DNA of 64,000 bases from Hormiphora californensis (Eukaryota > Animalia > Ctenophora): the NCBI GenBank assembly GCA_020137815.1, contig CM035358.1:7874001-7938000 (forward strand), read 5' to 3'. The notes beneath the pieces were generated by a model. It made no database searches, was not told the DNA's origin, and saw only the letters and a program-made list of their open reading frames with translations. A program made the position numbers and the translations under genes. Position 1 is the first letter of the stretch; each line of letters starts with the position of its first letter. This document shows positions 42,593 through 64,000 of this stretch, piece after piece.

Positions 42593-43985
42593 ACATCTCT
42601 CTCTCTCTCTCTCCTCACTACACGGCAGGTCTTTACCACATCATGGCCTGGTATAATGCAACAACAGATCTCTTTCATCTTCCGACCATCTCTCTCTCTC
42701 TCCGTCGTAACGGAGGGTTAGAATATAACACTGAAAACACCACTAATATTCCTACACCCCCTTCAACCTTGTCTTATATTCAGACGGAATATAAGACAAG
42801 GGTCTTTTTAAAAAAGGGTCTTTTAAAGGGTCTTTTAAAGCGGTGGGAGTATCTCTCTTTGCTGATAATAGTTAATACAGTCGCCATATTATATTAAACT
42901 ATTTTCCAACATCAACACCAATCTCTCCCAACATGATAGGACCCTAGATTCTCTTGCCTAGCTAGACTGTGTTTCGCGCCCCGCCCACGAAACACCCCCT
43001 TATGTTCTAACCCTCCTTTACAATTTATGTAAAGGAGGGTTAGAACATTTAAGAAAGATTCTCTAGGAAATTTAATTAAAGAAGATAACATATAGATCAA
43101 ACCTACCTCTGAAGCACTTGCAGCCATGTTATTTTCGTTCTCATTTGTTGGATTTTCAGTCAGCTCACTCATGTTCACTTTGACACCAGTAGCATTGGTC
43201 ACCTTACCTAAATAAATATGGGTGTTAGTTGGATCTTGCCTAGAGGAGAGGGAATAAGTGGGTTAACACTTCTAACTTAGAAGAGAATTTAAAAGACGCA
43301 TAGTTTGGTTAGAGTTTTTCGTGAAAAAGGAAAGAAGATATTGGCGAGAATTGAACTAAGGGATGGATTGAACAACTGACTGATAGAAAATAGACAGGGG
43401 GAAGAGAGATGTGTTAAGTTGCCAAAAGCACTTTGACAGTGTCTTCGAGCTGTAGTTAGACACACAAGCAGACCCAAGGGAATTATATTTCTAGATCCTG
43501 ACAAGCAGATCCTGGTTCACGCAGACACCATGCCCCATGGAATATTCTAGAGCTGATAGAACGTGGTTCCTTTTTACTTAATGAATACTACCATTCTCGA
43601 GTGTGGTGGCGAACAAATATTTCCCACCAATATATTCTGGACTTGGTGTTCTAGAAGGTCTACAGCCGGGGAAGTGTTCATGATTACCATGACCAGGAAC
43701 CGACACAAGTAAACAACCAATCAGAACTCATTATTTAGGTAACGTGACTGGTAATCAGCCAATCAGGGACCAGTATTTGGCTCTGGAAGGTCTACAACTG
43801 GGCAAGGTGTCCTGTGGAAGTGTTCATGATTACACACTTCATTCGTTATATAAAATATATATATAAAGCCGTCCTAAGTTATGTGCGTATATATGTGTAT
43901 GCACATAGAGCGGTGAATATTATGCAGAGAATATGCGCATAATATATGAGTGGGGATGTAATAATGCAACTCGGTAGGATTGGAG

Positions 43986-44054
<69 letters not shown>

Positions 44055-44061
44055 GAGAGAG

Positions 44062-44115
<54 letters not shown>

Positions 44116-46172
44116 GAGAGAGAGAGAGAGAGAGAGAGAATGCGAGAGAGAGAGGAGAGAGGAGAGAGGGAGGAGAGAGAGAGAGAGAGGAGAGAGGAGA
44201 GAGAGAGAGAGAGAGAGAGTAGAGGCTGATCGAGAGAAGACGAGAGGAGGAGAGAGAGGGAGAGAGAGAGAGAGTCGTTGTTCCGCCCAACGATCTAAGA
44301 ACACTCCACACCTTTAACATATTAGAATAATTCAAGTATCAAGAAATAAAATGCCGGGATTTTAAAAACGGCTCAATCAGAGTTGGTTCATCTCAACCAG
44401 TTATCTGCCTAGCAATCGAATCTTAATTTTAACTAAATAAGAGTTGTGACTTGTGTGGCTCATCATTTTATTTCGTAAGTGGTGTGAGCTCGCTCTGTGA
44501 AGGTAATGGAATAGAAGCGAGCGCACTCTGTGAGGGTTCGGAGGATCAAAAAAGAGCGGTACACAATGGAGGAAAAGGCAACCAAAGGTTCTGAGTAGAG
44601 TAACACGATCTCCTTCTTGAAATACAATGTAACCATTACATTCAGTAACTTGATCTCTGGGAAGAGAGATCATGTGAAATTCTGCAGACCGGGCTACTGT
44701 TATAATCAAGCTGTCTAGCGAAAAGGTTGTCCCCCTAAAGACTTCCTTTTCCGAACCGGGTCGAACTGCGTGTAGTCTGACAATGAAAATGAAGGGAAGG
44801 TCAAAGGTTTATCGAGTGGCAGACCATGCAACAAATCCGGTTAAAGCGAACACAGATCTATCAAACACACAGATCCATGACATCAAACACACAGATGATC
44901 CATGACATCTATCACAAAGATCACGACGCTGCACAACACATACAGATCACACAACACACGCCCCTGGACACAAGTTGGACACACACACACAACACACCGC
45001 CTAAATAAACACAAACAGGGCAAACACAAACAGAATCACAGAGACAGACACTGGGAGTTCAGATTTGGAGAGAAAGAGATGGAGGGGGAGAGAGACCAGA
45101 GGGGAAAGTGATGGAGGGAGAGAGAGACCACAGCGAGGAACAACGATGGAGAAAGAGGGTGAAATAACTGTAAATGATAAAGTAATGAGCGAAATGATGA
45201 GGGCGGGGAAGATTTAATTTGATATATACATATTGCTAATAAATATGATCATGTATTTCATTACATATTTTACACACACACCTGTGTTTTACTTGAATGT
45301 GTAATATAACACACGTGTAGCTTACTGTTTCATTGTCTTTAACACTTCCTAGTTCTACAAGTCACCCCCCCCCTTATATAATATTTGAACTTTCAAGTGG
45401 CCCGCCACCCCGACATTATTATGTGTATTGAGGGGGACATATTTTCTAGTGAATACCCCACAACTCACAATTGGGGAATTTATTATGCCACAACTACACT
45501 CACATGTTAACCAAGCTGTGTGTAATTGAGAAGTGAGGCGTAACATAGCGGTACACATGTGAGTCTGGTTATATATTTTACTATAATAATCAGTATCTCA
45601 TCATCATCAATCAAAATGTTCAATTCCATGGGATAAATTTGAAGAACTCAGTGAGATTCCTTGGAAGATTAAAAACAGGAAAAGAGCCTGAAAAAAACAG
45701 AAAAAGAGCCTGAAAAAGTAGAATTTCAATTATATATCAGTGTACCTGCTGAGAATTCGAGTTTGTTCATTTCTTCAACACAGCTTTGAAGGGAGCCGAT
45801 CATATCGTTACTGCAAATCTCAAGCTGGGCTGAATCAGAGGGGTCCAATTCTTTGCTGACCTGGGAAAAGTTATCGTTATTAGAATCAAACAGGAATGCC
45901 TAAATAAAACTGCCGTAGCTGGTTAACCTATTTTAAAGGTCGCATCCCGACCAGTCCCGGGTCCCGGGTTATCCAACTATAAATTCATACTAACAAGTAA
46001 AACAAGGAAGTTTTAGTTCAACAATTCACATTATTAAGATAGGACCATGATCTACATTATAAGCGTCAGTGGGGGCCGTCAGCCCGGCTCGAAATGTTCT
46101 TGAAGGTGCGACCAATGGGGATTTCTCCATTGGAAAGGTGTGATTTAGTAATATTTCACAAAAATCGCGAAT

Positions 46173-53106: not shown

Positions 53107-53505
53107 ACTATAGGAAAAATAATGCCATCAAATTTCATCGGGTACCACACACGGTCACCCCAACAAATTTCAAACACAATGAACTCTGGGCACCCGGCAC
53201 TGGTAAATCAAAGTCGTAAACCTGACACCGTTTCGGGGCGGAAATAAAGAGCCAAAATGAGCAGGATTTGTATGGTATGAGTCACGGATTCGAGTAACGA
53301 GGAACCGCACGGAAATGTTCAGGCCTCCACCCAGGCTGCACCACTTGAGTCACCTGTCACGACGACCAATGACAGCTCAGATGACGATAGGGTTACGAGT
53401 GCGTGCTTTTCTGTCAAAAGAGGTCACCCCAATAAGAAATGTCACCCTGAGGGGGCTCCAGGTCTAAAGACGTAAAACGAAAATTTAAGAGTGAAAATAA
53501 AAAAC

Positions 53506-56500
53506 AGTAAATATTATAAATTATAAAAGAAGCCACATGCATCTGGCCTAACAATGTCAATAATAGTATATATAAATTGTTTTTGCCTGACTGGCTACAC
53601 GAAGAAAATCACATAAAATACATGCAACAGTTAAAGACTAGTATGTATGGTACAGATCTGATGAAGAGCCATCATTCTTGTTCCTTCCTCTGTAACCCCG
53701 AATAGAACAAGTTATGGAGCGGACCATTGAAAATGATAGACGAACACGGAGGTATCGAATACACTCCTGGTAGGTATAGCCAGTTTTCCGCGATTTCTTG
53801 GTTGCGAGTTGCTTCAGAGTTCTGCTGAACTCTTGACCAAGTCCACCGGTCGTTGACATAACGAGGGGAGTAAAAGAAGCTTTTTCCACCTCGAGAATGC
53901 GATGTAGATAGTTCTTCTTCTTCCCTTCCTCGTGCTTGATATACGTTTGAGGGATATCCTGAGTCTCATTAGACTGTGCCCTTGGGTTAAAAACCCTTAC
54001 GTCAAAATAGGTGCAGTCCATTGGTCCCCAGAATCCCCTCGTTCGAATGTCAAGGCGAGCTCCATCCTCTGTAATGGTCCCAGGTGGTAGTTTTGCTCCT
54101 CTAACTTCCAGTAGGTGGGGTTCAGCCTTAGTGTCGTAGCACACTTTGTCCAGCTCCGCAGTTAGAAAGTCTCGAACGCAATCGTGTCTGACCGCAACAA
54201 ATCCCCCGCGTTTGCATGACATGGAGTGATCGATGCTGTTTTCCTCCCCACAAACGCACTGTGTTGCTCTCGGCTGTCCCACTAGTGGGAGATCGTATCG
54301 TGCTGAGATTGAATCAAAGAACTCCTGGCGATTGAGTGTGAGCTTCAATGACTCTAGGGGTAGACAAGTGAGCCATGTTGATGCCCCTTTCTCGCTGAGT
54401 AGATCAAGGTTCCTCGCCTCTCTTGGCTTGATTGACTGAACGATTTTTTCCCTGCATTCCTTGTGATAATTAGCTTTGCCAGTTTTGATGCTGAGGGCTA
54501 GGGCTTTCTCTGTCTCAGGATTCGGTATGTATTCTACGTCTTGTTTCTGGATGGCCTTCTGAAGTTCTTCTGTCGCTTTCAGTGAGTTCTGGTACTCCAG
54601 GTCAGCCATGTGACAGGGGTTTTCGACACCCAGCCCTCCCATTCTCGTAGGAAGTTCCATTATGGATCGTAGCGTATCAGGAATGAATGGTTGTCCTGTG
54701 ATGGCTGGGAGGAATTTCTCTCTGATTGCCTTCTCGATGGGCTCTAGTTCTGTAGCGATCCCTGGTGTTGTCCGCAGCAAGTAGTTCCACTTCTTACTCA
54801 ACCCGATTGTGTAGGCTGAATAAGCTAGTTGGGGTTCGTTGCAGGCAATGTCGCTCAGTTGTTCTATCTCCTCGACCCATGTCTTCACTTCATTCTTCAC
54901 CCACTCCTTCATTCCATCATCGCTCCCAATGAAGGAACCCAGGTAACGGTGACCAACAGTTGTTATGTTGACATCTGGAAACAGTTCCTTGGCTCTTTCC
55001 TCCTTGTCTTCTTTCACAATCAGCCAACTTTTCGAAGGCTCAGGGTAGTATCCAAAGCCTGGACCCTTCTCTTTTACCTTGCTCCACCACTTCTCGATAA
55101 TGGCTAGAGTGCCTCCGCCACCTGCATCATCTGCATAGAGGATCTGAAAGAGTTCATCATCTAAAGAGTTTTCAATGTTACGGAGAGAATTAGCTAATGG
55201 CATTAGGCCACATGCATACATAGGCATGGCAGTGGTATCACCCTGTGTTGTGCCTTCTTTTGATAGTAGGGTGTCATGTGAATTTCCATCAGATATGAAT
55301 AGTTTGGCTGGCAAGCCGTATGTGTTTGATAAATACATGCTAAAATCACGACATAAATAATCAATATTGCTTAGAGCAACTTTTCGGTTTAAAGAATTAA
55401 AGGCATTGGACGCGTCAATTAACAGTATACATTCACATTTATCATCATTAAATTTTTCTCTTAAAGCATGCACTGCAGCTTCAACACCACTCTTCAGTCC
55501 CCCACACAGTTGTATTGGGGCTGTTGCCTCTATAATGTCAGGTTTTAGGACCGTTACAACAACTTTCCCCACAAGCCTTCGAATCACTTCACCCACACCG
55601 ATCGGCCTGATACCTGCTGGCTTTTTCGATAAGGGAATCAGTCTGCTAGCAACGAATGCTTCAAGGTAGATGGGATCAGTATTTTCAGTTGCCAGTTTAG
55701 TTGCAAGGGTGGCGATCGCCCGTGCTAGGTCATACGATTTGGGTTTGAACTTCTTGCACAGCAGAATGTGTTTCCAGAGTCCAGCGTCAGCTCCAGACGG
55801 ACCACCTGATCCCGTAAGGTGTTTGGCAGCACGGAGCACTGATTCAGGGGTAATGCTAGAGAAAATCACGTCGTTGGTGGGCAGCACAGGGCCATGAAGG
55901 AAGTAAGTTGAGTCAGCCGGCTCCGGGTGTTTCAGTTTCAGCTGATTGACAACTGCCGAGGTGATAGGAACCGGTGCTACTCCACATGCAGAGTTTTTGA
56001 TAGCTCGGAGTGCAGCCCCTACCCTACCCTGAAGCATGAGTCGAGTGAATGCTTTCGTGCTGTTTTGTTGCTGGTTAGTGTTGGACTGTACTAGTCTCTT
56101 CTGGATCACTCTCCCTTCTCTAAGTAGAGTCTGTAAGTCGCCATCATGGAAGAGTTTCAGCCTGTGATGAAGAAACTTCACATGGTCTTTAGTTTTGCTA
56201 TCAGAAGAAGGTTTCTGTAACAGTAAAACAAAAGCTACCATCAGTTTGGTTAGAGCCACAGGCTTCATATCAGAGTCTGAGTTAAAGAGGTTGATAATTT
56301 CAGTAATTTCATGAATGAAGGCAAGTCCAGCATCACCTGAGGGGACCTGAAATAAGTTCTTCCTCCATAGAACCACTTCTGAATAAACCTCCCGGATCTC
56401 TGAATAAAGTTTTTCAATTGAGTTGGAGGGTACAAAAGGTGCAAAGCTACGTTTAGTGTCTTCCAGGAGTTTCATGAGCTCTGCTCTTCGCATGTTAGAT

Positions 56501-56904
56501 TTGGGTTTAACTCCGAGTGCCGTTAGTTCGGCTTTCATTTCATGCATTGTCTTTTTCGGCTCGGATTCGGGAGAACAATTAGCAGGGGGAGTTTCACATG
56601 AGGGACAAACCCAATACGTACCATTGTTTGAAATGTCTCTGAAAGTGGCAAGACTTATCTTAGAGCAGGTTCGATGGTACCATGCCTGGCATGAGTCGCA
56701 CTGAACACCGTCCTCAACTTCTTGGTGGCAGGTTGGGCATGGATACTCGATCGTAGTAGGGTTAGCCATTATAATCGGTCATAGGCTGATGGCTTCGTTT
56801 TAGGCCTGCCCGTATGGGCGGTTGCTCATCCTGCGTGGAGATCTCAAATTAATTTGTTTAAAGTAGTGTTGAAAAGTAGTGTTGAAAAGTAGTGTTGAAA
56901 AGTT
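53506..56904 (-). mobile_element. Full-length CRE-clade (RLE-type) non-LTR retrotransposon beginning with a spliced-leader exon
   Basis: 14-bp TSD tgaaaataaaaaac at 53492-53505 and 56905-56918; single intact ORF; 73-nt 5' UTR after the SL; AT-rich ~130-nt 3' UTR without poly(A). Confidence 0.9.
53638..56769 (-). CDS. Retrotransposon protein: PHD finger, SAP/HeH-like helix pair, reverse transcriptase, Zn knuckle, restriction-like endonuclease
   Basis: CPTC..QCDSCQAWYHRTC..WVCPSC (PHD); IRPIGVGE, IDASNAFNS, GTTQGD, YADD, YLGS (RT); CVCG..HSMSC..RHD; RLDI..FDVRV..HEEGKKKNY..FTPLVMSTTGG (RLE). Intronless, 1043 aa. Confidence 0.95.
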   Translation of the reverse strand: MANPTTIEYPCPTCHQEVEDGVQCDSCQAWYHRTCSKISLATFRDISNNGTYWVCPSCETPPANCSPESEPKKTMHEMKAELTALGVKPKSNMRRAELMKLLEDTKRSFAPFVPSNSIEKLYSEIREVYSEVVLWRKNLFQVPSGDAGLAFIHEITEIINLFNSDSDMKPVALTKLMVAFVLLLQKPSSDSKTKDHVKFLHHRLKLFHDGDLQTLLREGRVIQKRLVQSNTNQQQNSTKAFTRLMLQGRVGAALRAIKNSACGVAPVPITSAVVNQLKLKHPEPADSTYFLHGPVLPTNDVIFSSITPESVLRAAKHLTGSGGPSGADAGLWKHILLCKKFKPKSYDLARAIATLATKLATENTDPIYLEAFVASRLIPLSKKPAGIRPIGVGEVIRRLVGKVVVTVLKPDIIEATAPIQLCGGLKSGVEAAVHALREKFNDDKCECILLIDASNAFNSLNRKVALSNIDYLCRDFSMYLSNTYGLPAKLFISDGNSHDTLLSKEGTTQGDTTAMPMYACGLMPLANSLRNIENSLDDELFQILYADDAGGGGTLAIIEKWWSKVKEKGPGFGYYPEPSKSWLIVKEDKEERAKELFPDVNITTVGHRYLGSFIGSDDGMKEWVKNEVKTWVEEIEQLSDIACNEPQLAYSAYTIGLSKKWNYLLRTTPGIATELEPIEKAIREKFLPAITGQPFIPDTLRSIMELPTRMGGLGVENPCHMADLEYQNSLKATEELQKAIQKQDVEYIPNPETEKALALSIKTGKANYHKECREKIVQSIKPREARNLDLLSEKGASTWLTCLPLESLKLTLNRQEFFDSISARYDLPLVGQPRATQCVCGEENSIDHSMSCKRGGFVAVRHDCVRDFLTAELDKVCYDTKAEPHLLEVRGAKLPPGTITEDGARLDIRTRGFWGPMDCTYFDVRVFNPRAQSNETQDIPQTYIKHEEGKKKNYLHRILEVEKASFTPLVMSTTGGLGQEFSRTLKQLATKKSRKTGYTYQECIRYLRVRLSFSMVRSITCSIRGYRGRNKNDGSSSDLYHTY

Positions 56905-56909
56905 TGAAA
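56843..56909 (-). other. Genomic copy of the ctenophore spliced-leader exon with an internal 13-mer triplicated
   Basis: Minus strand reads TTTCAAA(CTTTTCAACACTA)x3 CTTTAAACAAATTAATTTGAG, matching the ctenophore SL as recalled (...TTTCAAACTTTTCAACACTACTTTAAACAAATTAATTTGAG). It is followed by ATCTCC rather than GT, so it is not an SL RNA gene. Confidence 0.85.
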
Positions 56910-57636
56910 ATAAAAAACGGCAGGGATTTTTTAATTTGGAGGTCTAGTGCCGCGCAATCCTTTTTATGCGCGGCGTTGTATTTGCGCGTGACAACACACA
57001 CTGCGCTGGCAAGTGCAACAGGTGGCCATTTTCCTTGTTTACATCAATAAGCGATACATTATGTAACAACATTTGGTTATTTGAGCCGGCACTGGCGTAA
57101 TACTGCACTGCAGTGACTGCTCCCTGGGACCCCCCCCCCTGATTCAGATTCGCGGTTGCGTTGAATTGGGCTAGGGCCGGGGTTCCCAGACCGGTAGACC
57201 ACCTGACCAGTGATCACAGTCCCAGCTGGGATCCAGAGGGATTATAATAGATAAACCACCAGAGACGAAATCTATTGCCAGAAAAGTGACTCAGTGACAT
57301 GTCATGACAATTCTGACCCACTATTTTGGCGGTGCATGGCTTCCCGGGCATATAACAATAATCTCCAGCTGGGACGTCTCTGGAAAGGTATACGGATACC
57401 TACTAGTACTTACTATAACTACATAGCCTACAAATATTTAGTTGTTTAACAATAACAGGGAGAACAAATCATTTTAAGAGAAAAATTATCGTGATATGGA
57501 CACACTGATAAGCTTCAAGCGACTAAAAACAGTTGCACTCATTTGTACAATTATTGAGTTTCTAACTCAATATTATATTACAGCCGTACAACAACAAAAC
57601 AGTGACAGCAGGTCTCGCCAGGTCATGAAACGAATA

Positions 57637-57895
57637 TTAGGGGAAACTCTAACTGAATGCCCGCGCAGTAATGGCGTCCCATCACTGGTAAAAATCTAAC
57701 TGATAATGGGAGTCATCACTCTGGGCGCGCCAGGATTTGCCACAACTTTTGCCAAAAAAAGGCTTTTACGTAGGGCGCGATGACAAACACACGAACATGG
57801 TCGCGCGTTCTTCCATCATTCCTTCCATTCAATTAGAGTTTTACCAGTGATGGGACGCCATTACTGCGCGGGCATTCAGTTAGAGTTTCCCCTAA
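57637..57895. mobile_element. MITE with ~57-bp perfect TIRs
   Basis: ttaggggaaactctaactgaatgcccgcgcagtaatggcgtcccatcactggtaaaa and its reverse complement. Confidence 0.9.
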
Positions 57896-58102
57896 GAATC
57901 CAAGCATATCGTCCATAGGAAAATAGTGTCTGTCCTACAACAGCGTTAAAACAAGGACATTATCTCAATTCTTCATTCTCCTAACTCTTTCTCAGTTCTG
58001 TGCCCTAATTGGCATGCCTATTTGTCTCTTGTTAGTTGTTGCAATTGGTAATCTCTATAATAAAAGCAGCACAGCAGCATTTCATTTCTTCAGACCAGCT
58101 CT

Positions 58103-61100
58103 TCAACTGGTTTTCTTGTGTTTGGTCAGAAAATCCCTGACTTTCTGCTCGTTCGAACCGGAAAATTCTTCAATCTGAAAAGATGGAATTTTAAAAAACC
58201 GTCGATCCCGTCGATAATATGTATTCACTTTTTGAATGCTCAAAAATGTTCAGTGTTCACACGACACGGCGTGCCTGGTGAAATTTTAACACGACCTAGC
58301 ATGCGACGGGAAACCACCACTTGTACGTGGTAGCTGAGGGTCTACAGAATGGCGCTACGGTGCGGGAAAAAACATTCCATTCCCTAAAATATTTTTTTTA
58401 CTTTTATTTGATTTGGGTCAAAATTGGCTATATTAAACGTGGTCCCGAAAAATCCATAATGACTTAGCACACGAAATATGTCACCCCTACCTATTTTTGC
58501 ACGTAGAATCGATTGCCGTTGAAGTCGAATCTCTAAGATGACTGTAAAATGGTCAAAAGTTGATTTTTTACCATTTTTTGGAGGTTTTTGGCCCCTAAAG
58601 GGGGGGTTCCAACCTATTTTTTTGTATTTTTTTGTATTTTTTTGTACGGACCATACATAAAAGTATCCAAAATTCCTGTTTTTTTCCATACAAACAATAC
58701 AAAAAAGTACAAAAAAGTACAAAAAATAATGAAGGATGTGGGTGCGTGAAAAAAGTATAAATAATACATGTACATGAACATAAACGGAACCCAGCTATAC
58801 ATAAACGGTAAGAAATTGCGATTCGGGGAAATTTCTCGCTTAGAAAATACGATTCGGGAAAATTTTCTCGGTAAGAAATTGCGATTCGGGAAAATTTCTT
58901 GCTTAGAAAATACGATTCGAGAAAATTTTCTCGGTAAGAAATAGCGATTTGGAGAAATTTCTCGCTTAGAAAATACGATTCGAGAAAATTTTCTCGGTAA
59001 GAAATTGCGATTCGAGGAAATTTCTCGCTTAGAAAATACGATTCGAGAAAATTTTCTCGGTAAGAAATTGCGATTCGGGGAAATTTCTCGCTTAGAAAAT
59101 ACGATTCGGGAAAATTTTCTTGGTAAGAAATTGCGATTCGAGGAAATTTCTCGCTTAGAAAATACGATTCGAGAAAATTTTCTCGGTAAGAAATTGCGAT
59201 TCGGGGAAATTTCTCGCTTAGAAAATACGATTCGGGAAAAATTTCTCGGTAAGAAATTGCGATTCGGGGAAATTTCTCGCTTAGAAAATACGATTCGGGA
59301 AAATTTTCTCGGTAAGAAATTGCGATTCGGGGAAATTTCTTGCTTAGAAAATACGATTCAGGAAAATTTTCTCGGTAAGAAATTGCGATTCGGGGAAATT
59401 TCTCGCTTAGAAAATACGATTCGGGAAAACTTTCTCGGTAAGAAATTGCGATTCGGGGAAATTTCTCGCTTAGAAAATACGATTCGAGAAAATTTCCTCG
59501 GTAAGAAATTGCGATTCGGGGAAATTTCTCGCTTAGAAAATACGATTCGAGAAAATTTTCTCGGTAAGAAATTGCGATTCGGGGAAATTTCTCGCTTAGA
59601 AAATACGATTCGAGAAAATTTTCTCGGTAAGAAATTGCGATTCGGGGAAATTTCTATCGCGATTTTGGCATGCTACATATGTAAGATATGTATATATTTT
59701 GTGCTAAATTGCGTGAAATAGCGTGGAAGAATGTTTAAAAACAGTAAAAGTTCAAACAATAATGGTAAATTACCATATAAAACTGTTTTTATTTTTTTGT
59801 ATTTTTTTGTACTTTTTTGTATTTTTTTGTATTTTTTTGTTTGAGGAAACCCGTGTTTTTTTCCGTACAAACGTACACGAAATAGGTTGGAACCCCCCCC
59901 CCCCTAAACCATTGAAAACGTTGAGATAGGAATTTGAAACTAGTGCCAATCGTTAAAATGGTCATTTTTCTACCAAGAACCAAGTTTTCGTGTATATCCG
60001 ATTTATGGTTAGATTTGGGCAAATTGTTGAAATCTGCCAACTAGGAGAACCGTAACTTGATTTTCTTGTTTTTTGGATTTTGGCATTTTTGACAAACTTC
60101 TGATTGAAATGGTCAATCGGGACCATGCTTAAGTTGTTTATGGGACAATTTTTGACTAAAATCCAAGATTTCATGCCAATCCAATAACAGATCGTTGATT
60201 TATAGAAAATTTAAGTAGGCAAAACGGTCAAAATGACAACTTTTCTTGCTTATTTTCACCGTTTTGCCTACTTCAATTTTCTATAAATCAACGATCTGTT
60301 ATTGGATTGGTATGAAATCTTGGATTTTAGTCGAAAATTGTCCCATAAACAACTTAAGCATGGTCCCGATTGACCATTTCAATCAGAAGTTTGTCAAAAA
60401 TGCCAAAATCCAAAAAACAAGAAAATCAAGTTACGGTTCTCCTAGTTGGCAGATTTCAACAATTTGCCCAAATCTAACCATAAATCGGATATACACGAAA
60501 ACTTGGTTCTTGGTAGAAAAATGACCATTTTAACGATTGGCACTAGTTTCAAATTCCTATCTCAACGTTTTCAATGGTTTAGGGGCCAAAAACCTCCAAA
60601 AAATGGTAAAAAATCAACTTTTGACCATTTTACAGTCATTTTAGAGATTCGACTTCAACGGCAATCGATTCTACGTGCAAAAATAGGTAGGGGTGACATA
60701 TTTCGTGTGCTAAGTCATTATGGATTTTTCGGGACCACGTTTAATACAGCCAATTTTGACCCAAATCAAATAAAAGTAAAAAAAAAAGATTTTAGGGAAT
60801 GGAATGTTTTTTCCCGCACCGTAGCGCCATTCTGTAGACCCTCAGCTACCACGTACAAGTGGTGGTTTCCCGTCGCATGCTAGGTCGTGTTAAAATTTCA
60901 CCAGGCACGCCGTGACGAGTCGGTTAAAACGGGAGAGTTCCATGAAAACTGTTACTTCATATAAAGTCAGAATTTCTTACCTTTCTGCATCTTCGAAAGA
61001 ACTGAAATGTTGGCACACACGATACTCCACAAGCCTGGGCTGTCACCTGCAGAAAATTGGAATTTTGTCATCTAGCTGCCGAGGACGGACAGACTTGCTC

Positions 61101-61474: not shown

Positions 61475-63743
61475 CTGAAAATATAAATCATTTGAGACTG
61501 GAAATGAGTAGAAATTAAATAAAGTATAAACAAGAAAGGCGTGAATTTGAAAATTCAAATTTTAGGGTCTGGCCATGCGGATTTTTATGCGCGCGCACAT
61601 GTGTATGACTAAGGTGATTGCTGAAAAGTTGCACTTTCATTTTCTAAGAGACTGCGCGCAGTACTAAGATGAGACATGAACAGCGTGAGACAAGAATGGC
61701 GCCTGTCCCACGAATAAAATATGCAACAATAATTATCAATTTTTAGCAATTATCAATATTGGCATCCGGTAACTTGGAGGTAGGGTTCTAGGTTGTCGTG
61801 GAATGTGCCTACATGTGAAACTACAACACACGGCAGTAAAGTGCCGGGCGCCTGACATGTCATGACATGTGTGACATCATACTATTTTCAACGATTCTCA
61901 CATCTCAAAAGATACGAAACTGTCGATCATGCCTATGATGATGATGATGATGATGATGATTCAGTGTTCTCACTTTCTTTCTGTTTCCGGAGAGTCTGAA
62001 CACAACAGTTTCCGTGTGAACTGGGCGATTAGAGGTAGTAGAACACAGGCTGCAGGTTCAAGGAGAGAGAAATATAAAAACAGACGGAGCTTGTTGATAT
62101 GCGGCTTCTCCTAATTTGGCTACTGTATATTCATGCATATCTTTGCTACAATACACCTTAGCAGCTAATACTACTGTCATCAGTTTCCTAGGACACCTAA
62201 AGGGTTTATTCCTAGCTGCGTGTGTGTGTAGGATCTATCCAGCTGCTGGTACCTATCTCCCTATCTCCCTATTATAGTTCTACTGATTCTACATACCCTT
62301 CACTCAAGCTGTCAGGCGGAGCTACCCGATCTGAGGGAACTGTCTTTAAAACAGCTAAAAAGAACTTCCCGGGACCTTCCATTTTGGCACTGTTCTAATG
62401 ACGATGTATTGGAATGATAGAGTTTGAGATATTGGTTGAGTCGGCGTGTAGTATTATATGAGCACGGATTGTGGGATTGATTTGTATGAATGGCCACAGT
62501 ATAATTAAGACGGATTGCACCGCTTTTGTCTCCGCAACTTCTTTCTTTCTATCTCCTCTCTTCTCCTATTTTCTATCTCCTCTCCCTCTCACCCGTTCTT
62601 ATATTTTCGTGATCGTGACTTTATGCAAAAGATAGAACTAAGAAGAGAGGGGGAAGAGAGAGTTAATGAAAGTACCTCATGTAACAACTAAGAAGAGTGG
62701 TATGAAATGCCCCCCCCCCCAAAGATCACGGAGATTACCTGGGTATTAGGTAATCTCCGTGATCTTTGGGAACACTTCATACCTGTATCTAGCTATCCAG
62801 TATACGGCTGAAAAAAAGAAAGAAACAACGCGAAGCACGTGTGGGCACGTGCAAAAGACAATGAGTACGGAGCACGGACACAGTGCAAGCGACTCAATGA
62901 GTGAAGTGAAGTGAGACATAGTATGAAGATGGATACGGTATAAACTGCAGGGATATTCGGTACTTTTTTCTAACAAAATCGCCGTGTTATTTTCTACAAG
63001 TCTACAACTTTTATTGACGCCGGAAGGAGCTATCATTTCTACAGACTAGTAATACATGGTAAAAGAGGAGATATTCATTAGAAATGAGATTAATTAGGAG
63101 GGGGACATTTTATTGTTCGGAACAATAAAATGTCCCCCTCAATGTTCTCTGCAGAGATTTATAGGGAGGGACTTTACGATCATTATCATCATGTGGTCAA
63201 AAGATACACTCAGACAAACCGCACATGTATTGCACATGATAGCCAATGTATACCAATTATAGACATTCTCTGACCCCCCTCTCCCAGCTCTGGAGTAAGA
63301 GTACAAACGGCTGTATGATCATTAAGGCTGTCACAGATCTGATCACACATTCACAGTGCTGACAATTCGTTTCACGTTCTATCGCCCTGGGAAATCCACC
63401 GAGCTTGTTTGGTTTTAGATAAAGTATGTGCTACACAGATCAGTCCGTAGCACTTCCCTTGAAAGACGCAGCTATTATACAATGTATTGCTCTCCCTCAC
63501 TTACACACACAGGTCCTGGACCTTGTATTGGAAAGGAATGAGGCATTGCATACATCTCTCTCTCTCTCCCTTCTCTCCCTTCTCTCTCTCACTATTTTTC
63601 TCTCTCTCTTTCTCTCCCTTCTCTCCCTTCTCTCTCTTTCTCTCTATCATCATATATGATCGCACAATGTACGACTTTAATTGGGTACCCTGTACTAACA
63701 CCGATTACAGAACATCATTGCTAACCAGTTGCCTAGTTGAGAT

Positions 63744-63824
<81 letters not shown>

Positions 63825-64000
63825 TATGGCCTAGAGAGAGAGACAGTAGACACCTGAACAGGATAGAATGCAGACTGGAGATTACTAACTAACTAACATT
63901 CAGCTAGGCAACTCATATTGTATTCTGGCTCTTCCTAAACATTGTACCAACCCATGTTCCAAACGACCAAACGTCACACTGTGTGTTTTTCTGTCACACT

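Follow-up and report, generated by a model that had tools for sequence, protein, structure and literature searches.

We examined a 64,000-nucleotide stretch of the genome of the ctenophore Hormiphora californensis (contig CM035358.1 of assembly GCA_020137815.1, positions 7,874,001 to 7,938,000; the whole stretch is here called the window, and positions are counted from its first letter) and identified in it a retrotransposon without long terminal repeats (non-LTR) that carries spliced leader (SL) sequence at its 5' end. The unit measures 3399 bp, lies on the minus strand at 56904-53506 and is bounded by a perfect 14-bp repeat, its target-site duplication (TSD). From the 5' to the 3' end of the element, the features are as follows.

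56905-56918, minus strand: 5' copy of the 14-bp TSD, with the word gttttttattttca, identical to 53505-53492.
56843-56909, minus strand: SL-derived head, whose 3' end is the exact SL exon end (...TTTGAG), followed by AT, with no GT donor.
56865-56903, minus strand: three tandem units of a 13-nt SL segment, ACTTTTCAACACT (Tandem Repeats Finder: period 13, 3.4 copies, 100% match).
56831-56842, minus strand: 12-nt leader segment ATCTCCACGCAG, whose 3' end is a CAG acceptor; it is missing in a sister copy of the element, where the SL is joined right after it.
56800-56829, minus strand: 9-codon upstream open reading frame in the 5' untranslated region (UTR), opened by an upstream ATG at 56829.
56806-56819, minus strand: leader motif GCCC-N4-GGGC-AG, a 4-bp G/C hairpin with a variable loop, which starts 23 nt past the SL junction.
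53638-56769, minus strand: single open reading frame (ORF) of 1043 aa, coordinates including the stop codon.
56596-56739, minus strand: N-terminal PHD finger of the Pygopus type (Pfam, aa 11-58).
55126-55626, minus strand: reverse transcriptase core (Pfam RVT_1, aa 382-548).
53920-54258, minus strand: CCHC knuckle and predicted restriction-like (PD-(D/E)xK) endonuclease region, from invariant residues and alignment to the CCHC-RHN-EP stretch of R2.
53506-53637, minus strand: 3' UTR, conserved in the family up to 53523 and ending in a copy-specific, A/T-rich 17-nt tail (53522-53506), without poly(A).
53492-53505, minus strand: 3' copy of the 14-bp TSD, gttttttattttca.

The SL-like head terminates in ...AAATTAATTTGAG at 56843, its last letters there reading ...AATTTGAG, and is followed by ATCTCC and not by GT. 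It agrees with the leader given for Hormiphora californensis in the genome paper of this species (PMC8527503), and leads into a 5' UTR of 73 nt (56842-56770). The last five nucleotides of the 5' TSD copy (56909-56905, TTTCA) also match the SL, indicating that the true TSD is 9-14 bp long, with a 5-nt microhomology at the 5' junction. The 13-nt unit ACTTTTCAACACT occurs once in the canonical SL and once in the head of the sister copy, and three times in the window element. We thus confirm the anatomy of SL head, TSD and ORF described in a first-pass annotation made from the letters of the window. This had reported a complete ORF with PHD finger, reverse transcriptase and restriction-like endonuclease inside a perfect 14-bp TSD, which is borne out by the Pfam domains, by the invariant residues described below and by gttttttattttca at both ends, and an SL-like 5' end without a GT donor, fused to a 73-nt 5' UTR, which is present and aligns with the published leader of the species. 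Its statement that the surroundings of the empty site are not an SL gene holds as well. The GT donor, the intron with an Sm site and the conserved upstream block of SL RNA genes are absent from the element, in which AT and the rest of the element's own UTR come after GAG, and the head is the only SL match in the 64-kb window, indicating that the insertion site was not an SL gene. Chance matches to the SL 17-mer, with two mismatches allowed, are expected at 0.11 per window and other copies of the family have 9-15-bp TSDs of their own, excluding a chance origin of the head. An Rfam scan of the element for hepatitis delta virus (HDV)-like or hammerhead ribozymes gave no match, and the folding energy of the 5' UTR is ordinary (z = -0.6).

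For the protein, a Pfam scan of the ORF identified the PHD finger and RVT_1 and nothing else, and a single-sequence search of the PDB returned PHD fingers only, R2 proteins being reached with a homologue profile and with the predicted fold. In an alignment of 32 homologues (37-57% identity, one of them from Mnemiopsis), residues C838, C840, H848, C852, R861, H862, D907, D923, E947 and K950 are invariant, and the profile made from these homologues reaches R2 structures both in the reverse transcriptase and in the CCHC-RHN-EP stretch. An AlphaFold2 model of the ORF (predicted local distance difference test 87.8, predicted template-modelling score 0.78) has as its best matches five R2 protein structures (9nl3, 9nl2, 9dou, 8gh6 and 8ibw; E 1e-21 to 2.5e-18 over 900-1200 columns), behind which ranks LINE-1 ORF2p. 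Because homologue profile and predicted fold both best match R2 proteins, the element is by prediction an R2-like non-LTR retrotransposon bearing a restriction-like endonuclease. Its reverse transcriptase is of the long interspersed nuclear element (LINE) type, as judged from RVT_1, from the profile alignment to the R2 enzyme and from a fold nearest to R2 and then to LINE-1 ORF2p. C-terminal to it, the invariant residues, the alignment to R2 and the structure comparison place a CCHC knuckle followed by a predicted PD-(D/E)xK endonuclease.

The first-pass annotation had called the element a CRE retrotransposon. The order of reverse transcriptase, CCHC knuckle and endonuclease is shared with CRE1, SLACS and CZAR; the insertion into SL genes that characterises classical CRE elements is not. 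Five copies of the family lie at unrelated A/T-rich sites and the window is without an SL gene, so that the hallmark of CRE1, SLACS and CZAR, insertion into the exons of SL RNA genes, is absent; as insertion is not site-specific, the element lacks the defining behaviour of the classical members. The CRE clade label is thus not established, an R2-like endonuclease architecture being what the analysis supports. Among the listed clades of non-LTR elements with a restriction-like endonuclease, NeSL/Utopia elements insert into SL1 or U2 small nuclear RNA genes and often encode a Ulp1-type protease domain, and the HERO clade is mostly non-specific (PMC4640811). We found no SL1 or U2 target among the copies, and no Pfam domain other than PHD and RVT_1 in the ORF; insertion of the window family is non-specific, and the family may belong to CRE, HERO or another clade.

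We defined this family by a DNA search of the genome (110.7 Mb, 45 contigs) and an alignment of the matching loci. It contains two full-length copies, the window element and locus L115 (C3:7155187-7158529), and at least 10 5'-truncated copies with 94-99% identity and a common 3' end. TSDs are visible at five copies (14, 15, 11, 11 and 9 bp), whose sites are unrelated and A/T-rich; such duplications, together with 5'-truncated copies that share a 3' end, are the hallmarks of target-primed reverse transcription. The conserved 3' end of the family is followed by a copy-specific A/T-rich tail, with no poly(A). The sister copy L115 has an open ORF and a 15-bp TSD (TTTTTTAAACAATTT); its SL head is plain, with a single unit, and its 3' tail of 24 nt is private. 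The ORFs are open in both full-length copies. Between them, 45 of 3132 nt are different, and the codon changes are 36 synonymous and 8 non-synonymous, indicating that both descend from lineages under selection for a working protein. The window element is apparently young, recently active and coding-competent.

Both full-length copies are headed by the SL, and the assembly holds no copy of the family that bears another 5' end. The 5' junction of L115 lies 12 nt further downstream than that of the window copy, the missing 12 nt being ATCTCCACGCAG, which ends in CAG. We compared 114 SL heads for pairs with the same but shifted downstream sequence, and identified long and short junction forms in five families, that of the window included. 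The extra segments of the long forms are CAG, ATAG, TTTCAG, ATCTCACCGCAG and ATCTCCACGCAG; all five end in AG, for which the chance expectation is about (1/16)^5. On the SL side, the junction is always at the exon end and never includes intron letters (GTAAG). Together, the AG rule and the exact SL exon end exclude that these junctions arose from a transcription start, from a jump to SL RNA as template or from an insertion into an SL gene. The sequence pattern supports the AG-ended segments as marks of spliceosomal acceptor choice, and is the one that trans-splicing followed by reverse transcription would be predicted to leave. Many SL heads are shortened by a few letters, and the 5' part of the SL is partially duplicated in the window copy and at L003, L006-L008, L010, L011, L016 and L024. 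Barring evident segmental duplicates with the same flanks (L013, L014 and L053), each of these irregularities is confined to one insertion. The 13-nt triplication in the window element is probably the product of reverse transcriptase slippage between two ACTTT words of the SL.

Thus, the RNA from which the window element was made had very probably been SL trans-spliced, and was then reverse transcribed into a site unrelated to SL genes. This was the central proposal of the first-pass annotation, and it gains weight from the shifted junction of the sister copy and from the AG rule in five families. In the sequence of events that we propose, the host SL would have been trans-spliced onto the element RNA at an AG acceptor that preceded ATCTCC. 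Target-primed reverse transcription by the element's own enzyme would then have run along the capped RNA to a point close to its 5' end, inserting the copy at an A/T-rich site other than an SL gene and generating the 14-bp TSD. Toward the RNA's 5' end, the enzyme would have slipped twice between the two ACTTT words, triplicating the 13-nt unit, and the end of the cDNA would have been joined to the target at the 5-nt microhomology. We infer that in each generation the 5' end of the element is set by host trans-splicing, and not by a ribozyme or an internal promoter.

We investigated the distribution of SL sequence across the whole genome. Exact matches to the 22-nt SL tail number 564, of which 16 are real SL RNA genes. 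In these, the SL is followed by the donor GTAAGCTGAG and an intron in which one stem-loop, the Sm-like CTTTTGG and a terminal stem-loop succeed one another; upstream, all 16 share the conserved block GGTCC...CATCAGCA. They are distributed as follows.

C13:3181656-3195345: cluster of nine SL RNA genes, most of them about 740 bp apart (L061, L113).
C5:6431345/6431986, C9:4528289/4528853 and C11:221861/222502: three inverted pairs of SL RNA genes.
C12:4023262: single SL RNA gene.

At least 548 of the 564 exact matches are SL heads, spread over all 13 chromosome-sized contigs. For chromosome C1, where the matches were read site by site to completion (52 sites), none has the intron of an SL gene; at each, the SL abuts another sequence, which in most cases recurs at other loci. 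The retrocopies lack the conserved block found upstream of the real SL genes, and a pattern search identified no complete SL with a second SL in the 12 nt that follow it anywhere in the genome. The Hormiphora genome paper counted 718 leader loci, which it took as sources of the leader, and makes no link between them and mobile elements (PMC8527503). This published feature of the genome is corrected here: of the roughly 560-720 "leader loci", 16 are SL RNA genes and most are retrocopy heads. Dozens of other retroelement families in Hormiphora are likewise headed by the SL. Like SL-relic retrocopies of the dinoflagellate type, the window element is a retroposed unit whose 5' end is an SL encoded in DNA, the unit in this case being an autonomous element.

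We additionally identified a variant head, SL-B, with three common substitutions. It has 12 exact sites in the genome, none of them at an SL-gene locus, and in the sampled loci is restricted to two related LINE families with an AlkB-like ORF. These loci are L043:1493-3015 and L055, which are 99% identical, and the C1 sites L088, L096, L097 and L101; the ORF of the SL-B LINEs combines an AlkB-like 2-oxoglutarate oxygenase stretch with an esterase-like stretch. SL-B may stem from an SL-B gene missed by the search pattern, or the AlkB-LINE families may inherit the head through DNA. At a further set of loci, the SL is joined directly to hammerhead-like cores (CTGATGA...GAAAC; L066, L067, L075, L078, L086, L090, L093 and L111 on C1, and L030), several of these units forming head-to-head inverted SL pairs, e.g. 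C1:3434329/3434374. The SL-headed hammerhead-core units look like Penelope-like elements made from trans-spliced RNA.

The sequence downstream of the SL is itself conserved between families. The motif GCCC-N4/5-GGGCAG, which has a chance expectation of 4.5e-5 per 80 nt, is present in 40 of the 114 SL heads, corresponding to 28 distinct leaders (L003-L122) from many divergent families. It starts 23-25 nt past the SL junction in leaders of the long form, and 24 of these 28 leaders have an ATG 8 or 11 nt before it. In the window element, the hairpin motif forms part of the minimum-energy fold of the 5' UTR. Across the 28 leaders the stem is invariant and the loop free, and since the stem never varies, it offers no test of covariation. 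A hairpin placed shortly 3' of an AUG can favour initiation. The leader hairpin and its upstream ATG may aid translation or may be a binding site for a protein of the element, the two being equally possible.

We searched sequencing runs, from DNA samples and two metatranscriptomes, in the form of Logan contigs. The SL part of the head is extremely deep in two DNA samples and in both metatranscriptomes. The loose contig ends at 56843 are diverse, indicating that the SL has many partners, and those at 56877 carry the canonical GTTTCAA, indicating that the triplication is specific to the window locus. A DNA contig of run X2 (53211-53527) spans the 3' junction without a difference. Contigs of the element body are present at low depth in both RNA libraries and belong to family variants that differ from the window copy, which indicates that the family is probably transcribed in wild animals, DNA carry-over being another possible source of these contigs.

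Of the alternatives to trans-splicing of the element's own RNA, the one that survives best, and that we nonetheless consider unlikely, is that an ancestor captured the SL a single time and that the head has since been transcribed from the DNA copy, for instance from an internal promoter, without being renewed. Such inheritance would suit SL-B, with its 12 sites away from SL genes and its occurrence, in our sample, on the two related AlkB-like LINE families alone, and promoter or translation signals could reside in the conserved leader that follows the SL. It is at odds with the two full-length copies of the window family, which differ in both junction and head, with alternative junctions that follow AG in five of five families, with truncations and duplications of the head that are private to single insertions, and with the absence from the retrocopies of the block upstream of real SL genes. 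Several points may be raised against trans-splicing as the source of the window element's head. The contigs contained no empty-site joint and none crossed the 5' junction, and in the runs, seen as contigs, there was no read with a freshly added canonical SL on element RNA, which does not amount to negative evidence; the SL-B head is common to all copies of two related LINE families without a recognised SL gene. At least some families may, then, pass the head on as DNA without renewing it.

A template jump, in which the reverse transcriptase ran off the 5' end of the element RNA onto SL RNA or an SL-bearing mRNA with no splicing involved, is very improbable. R2-type enzymes are known for end-to-end template jumps, a habit that fits this explanation, and the partial SL duplications at several heads resemble jumps or slippage. 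However, the SL ends exactly at the exon boundary and never with the GTAAG of the intron, and the AG rule on the element side, upheld in five of five families, is not expected from a jump or from a transcription start. Site-specific insertion into an SL RNA gene, as in CRE/SLACS/CZAR or NeSL, has the same endonuclease class and the SL at the element boundary in its favour, and is refuted by the anatomy, given that the SL lies inside the TSD and on the 5' side only, that the surroundings lack an SL intron, an Sm site and the upstream block of SL genes, and that the other copies of the family occupy unrelated A/T-rich sites. An assembly artefact or contamination with cDNA, for which nothing specific speaks, is scarcely credible in view of the TSDs at five copies, the DNA contig across the 3' junction, and the spread over all 13 chromosome-sized contigs of SL heads, which make up no fewer than 548 of 564 exact matches.

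Trans-splicing and subsequent reverse transcription would also leave each insertion with a relic that may serve it again. The relic end ...TTTGAG would recreate an AG acceptor exactly at the first base of the element in every insertion, so that a read-through transcript could be trans-spliced there anew. For the window element, read-through could come from a thioredoxin-like host gene on the same strand, which ends about 1.2 kb upstream and of which we identified two exons.

58106-58249, minus strand: probable last exon of the thioredoxin-like gene, ending ...EEFSGSNEQKVRDFLTKHKK, on the same strand as the element and about 1.2 kb upstream of it.
61558-61277, minus strand: WCGPC exon of the thioredoxin-like gene.

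Contigs from the RNA libraries cover the 3' region of this gene (57756-57893 and 57964-58176). The short junction forms would arise where the next (Y)CAG downstream is used instead. The conserved leader, with its hairpin 23-25 nt past the junction and its upstream ATG, would have a role in translation or be recognised by the element protein. We tentatively suggest, at somewhat short of an even chance, that the element thereby has a self-renewing, promoterless 5' end, and that a community of ctenophore retroelements lives off host SL trans-splicing in this way. Such renewal is consistent with the lack of SL-SL tandems genome-wide, with head defects that are not inherited, and with an upstream gene on the same strand whose 3' region is represented in an RNA library. 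The SL-B head, family-specific in our sample and present at 12 sites none of which is an SL gene, argues against renewal as a universal rule. If the proposal is correct, R2-like LINEs, other LINEs and Penelope-like elements would depend on host SL trans-splicing and not on internal promoters or ribozymes. In each generation, a non-LTR retrotransposon has to regain a 5' end that is complete and capped, for which internal promoters and 5' ribozymes acting on co-transcripts are the known solutions. In Hormiphora, host trans-splicing appears to supply this end, with the SL written into each new DNA copy. The SL head is thus a built-in tag for full-length reverse transcription, and the AG-bounded junction variants are a natural record of acceptor choice; together, they make SL trans-splicing and the formation of LINE 5' ends testable in an early-branching animal.

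We compared the element with known systems. Trypanosomatid CRE1, SLACS and CZAR and nematode NeSL-1 resemble it in their single ORF, in which CCHC and restriction-like endonuclease come after the reverse transcriptase, and in being linked to the SL. They insert into the exons of SL RNA genes, in contrast to the window element, which lies at an A/T-rich site outside SL genes, as do its relatives, and derives its SL from trans-spliced RNA. R2 shares the reverse transcriptase with C-terminal CCHC and endonuclease, and target-primed reverse transcription. It is specific to 28S ribosomal DNA, and its 5' end is freed from a co-transcript by an HDV-like ribozyme. Unlike R2, the window element has no Rfam ribozyme, has a PHD finger instead of zinc finger and Myb domains, and has a trans-spliced 5' end. 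L1Tc of Trypanosoma cruzi likewise needs a defined LINE 5' end in a trans-splicing host, which it obtains with its own Pr77 internal promoter and HDV-like ribozyme, on unspliced transcripts, whereas the window element uses the host SL.

Partial precedents for the integration of SL-bearing RNA have been published, and its principle as applied to transposable elements is already hinted at. Retrogenes of dinoflagellates bear DinoSL relics, indicating that trans-spliced RNA was reverse transcribed into DNA (PMC12014239); these are host genes with a tandem pile-up of SLs, in contrast to Hormiphora, where the units are autonomous retroelements and the genome is free of tandem SL-SL heads. In parasitic flatworms, 597 SL-like loci on LTR and LINE elements were set aside and suggested, in one sentence and without analysis of junctions, to be integrated retrotransposon transcripts bearing the SL (PMC12582326, 2025). 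The ctenophore elements go beyond this case in being of full length, with TSDs, evidence for acceptors, a conserved leader and a count against true SL genes. In Hydra, the SL is found on about 30% of Iso-Seq reads from transposable elements, which thus use host trans-splicing at the RNA level as well; unlike in Hormiphora, the accessible part of that paper reports no SL in genomic copies (PMC12220107, 2025). A search of full-text literature identified no description of SL-headed autonomous retrotransposons in ctenophores, and no analysis of full-length SL-headed autonomous elements, of an acceptor rule or of a leader architecture. A lack of precedent, suggested in the first-pass annotation for ctenophore CRE elements, is not established in view of the flatworm and Hydra reports.

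Finally, we noted minor features elsewhere in the window. In both individuals (runs X2 and X5), DNA contigs skip a 256-bp stretch at 57637-57892, which is an insertion/deletion allele and possibly a small mobile element. A long tandem array at about 58600-59720, with a 63-bp period, translates in several frames into a repeated unit of 21 aa, and is flanked by two inverted copies of a repeat of about 200 bp (58384-58722 on the minus strand, 60446-60883 on the plus strand) that encode the same peptide stretch. Long GA/CT dinucleotide microsatellites at 43870-44340 and 63490-63830 yield spurious ORFs rich in Ser/Leu or Arg/Glu.

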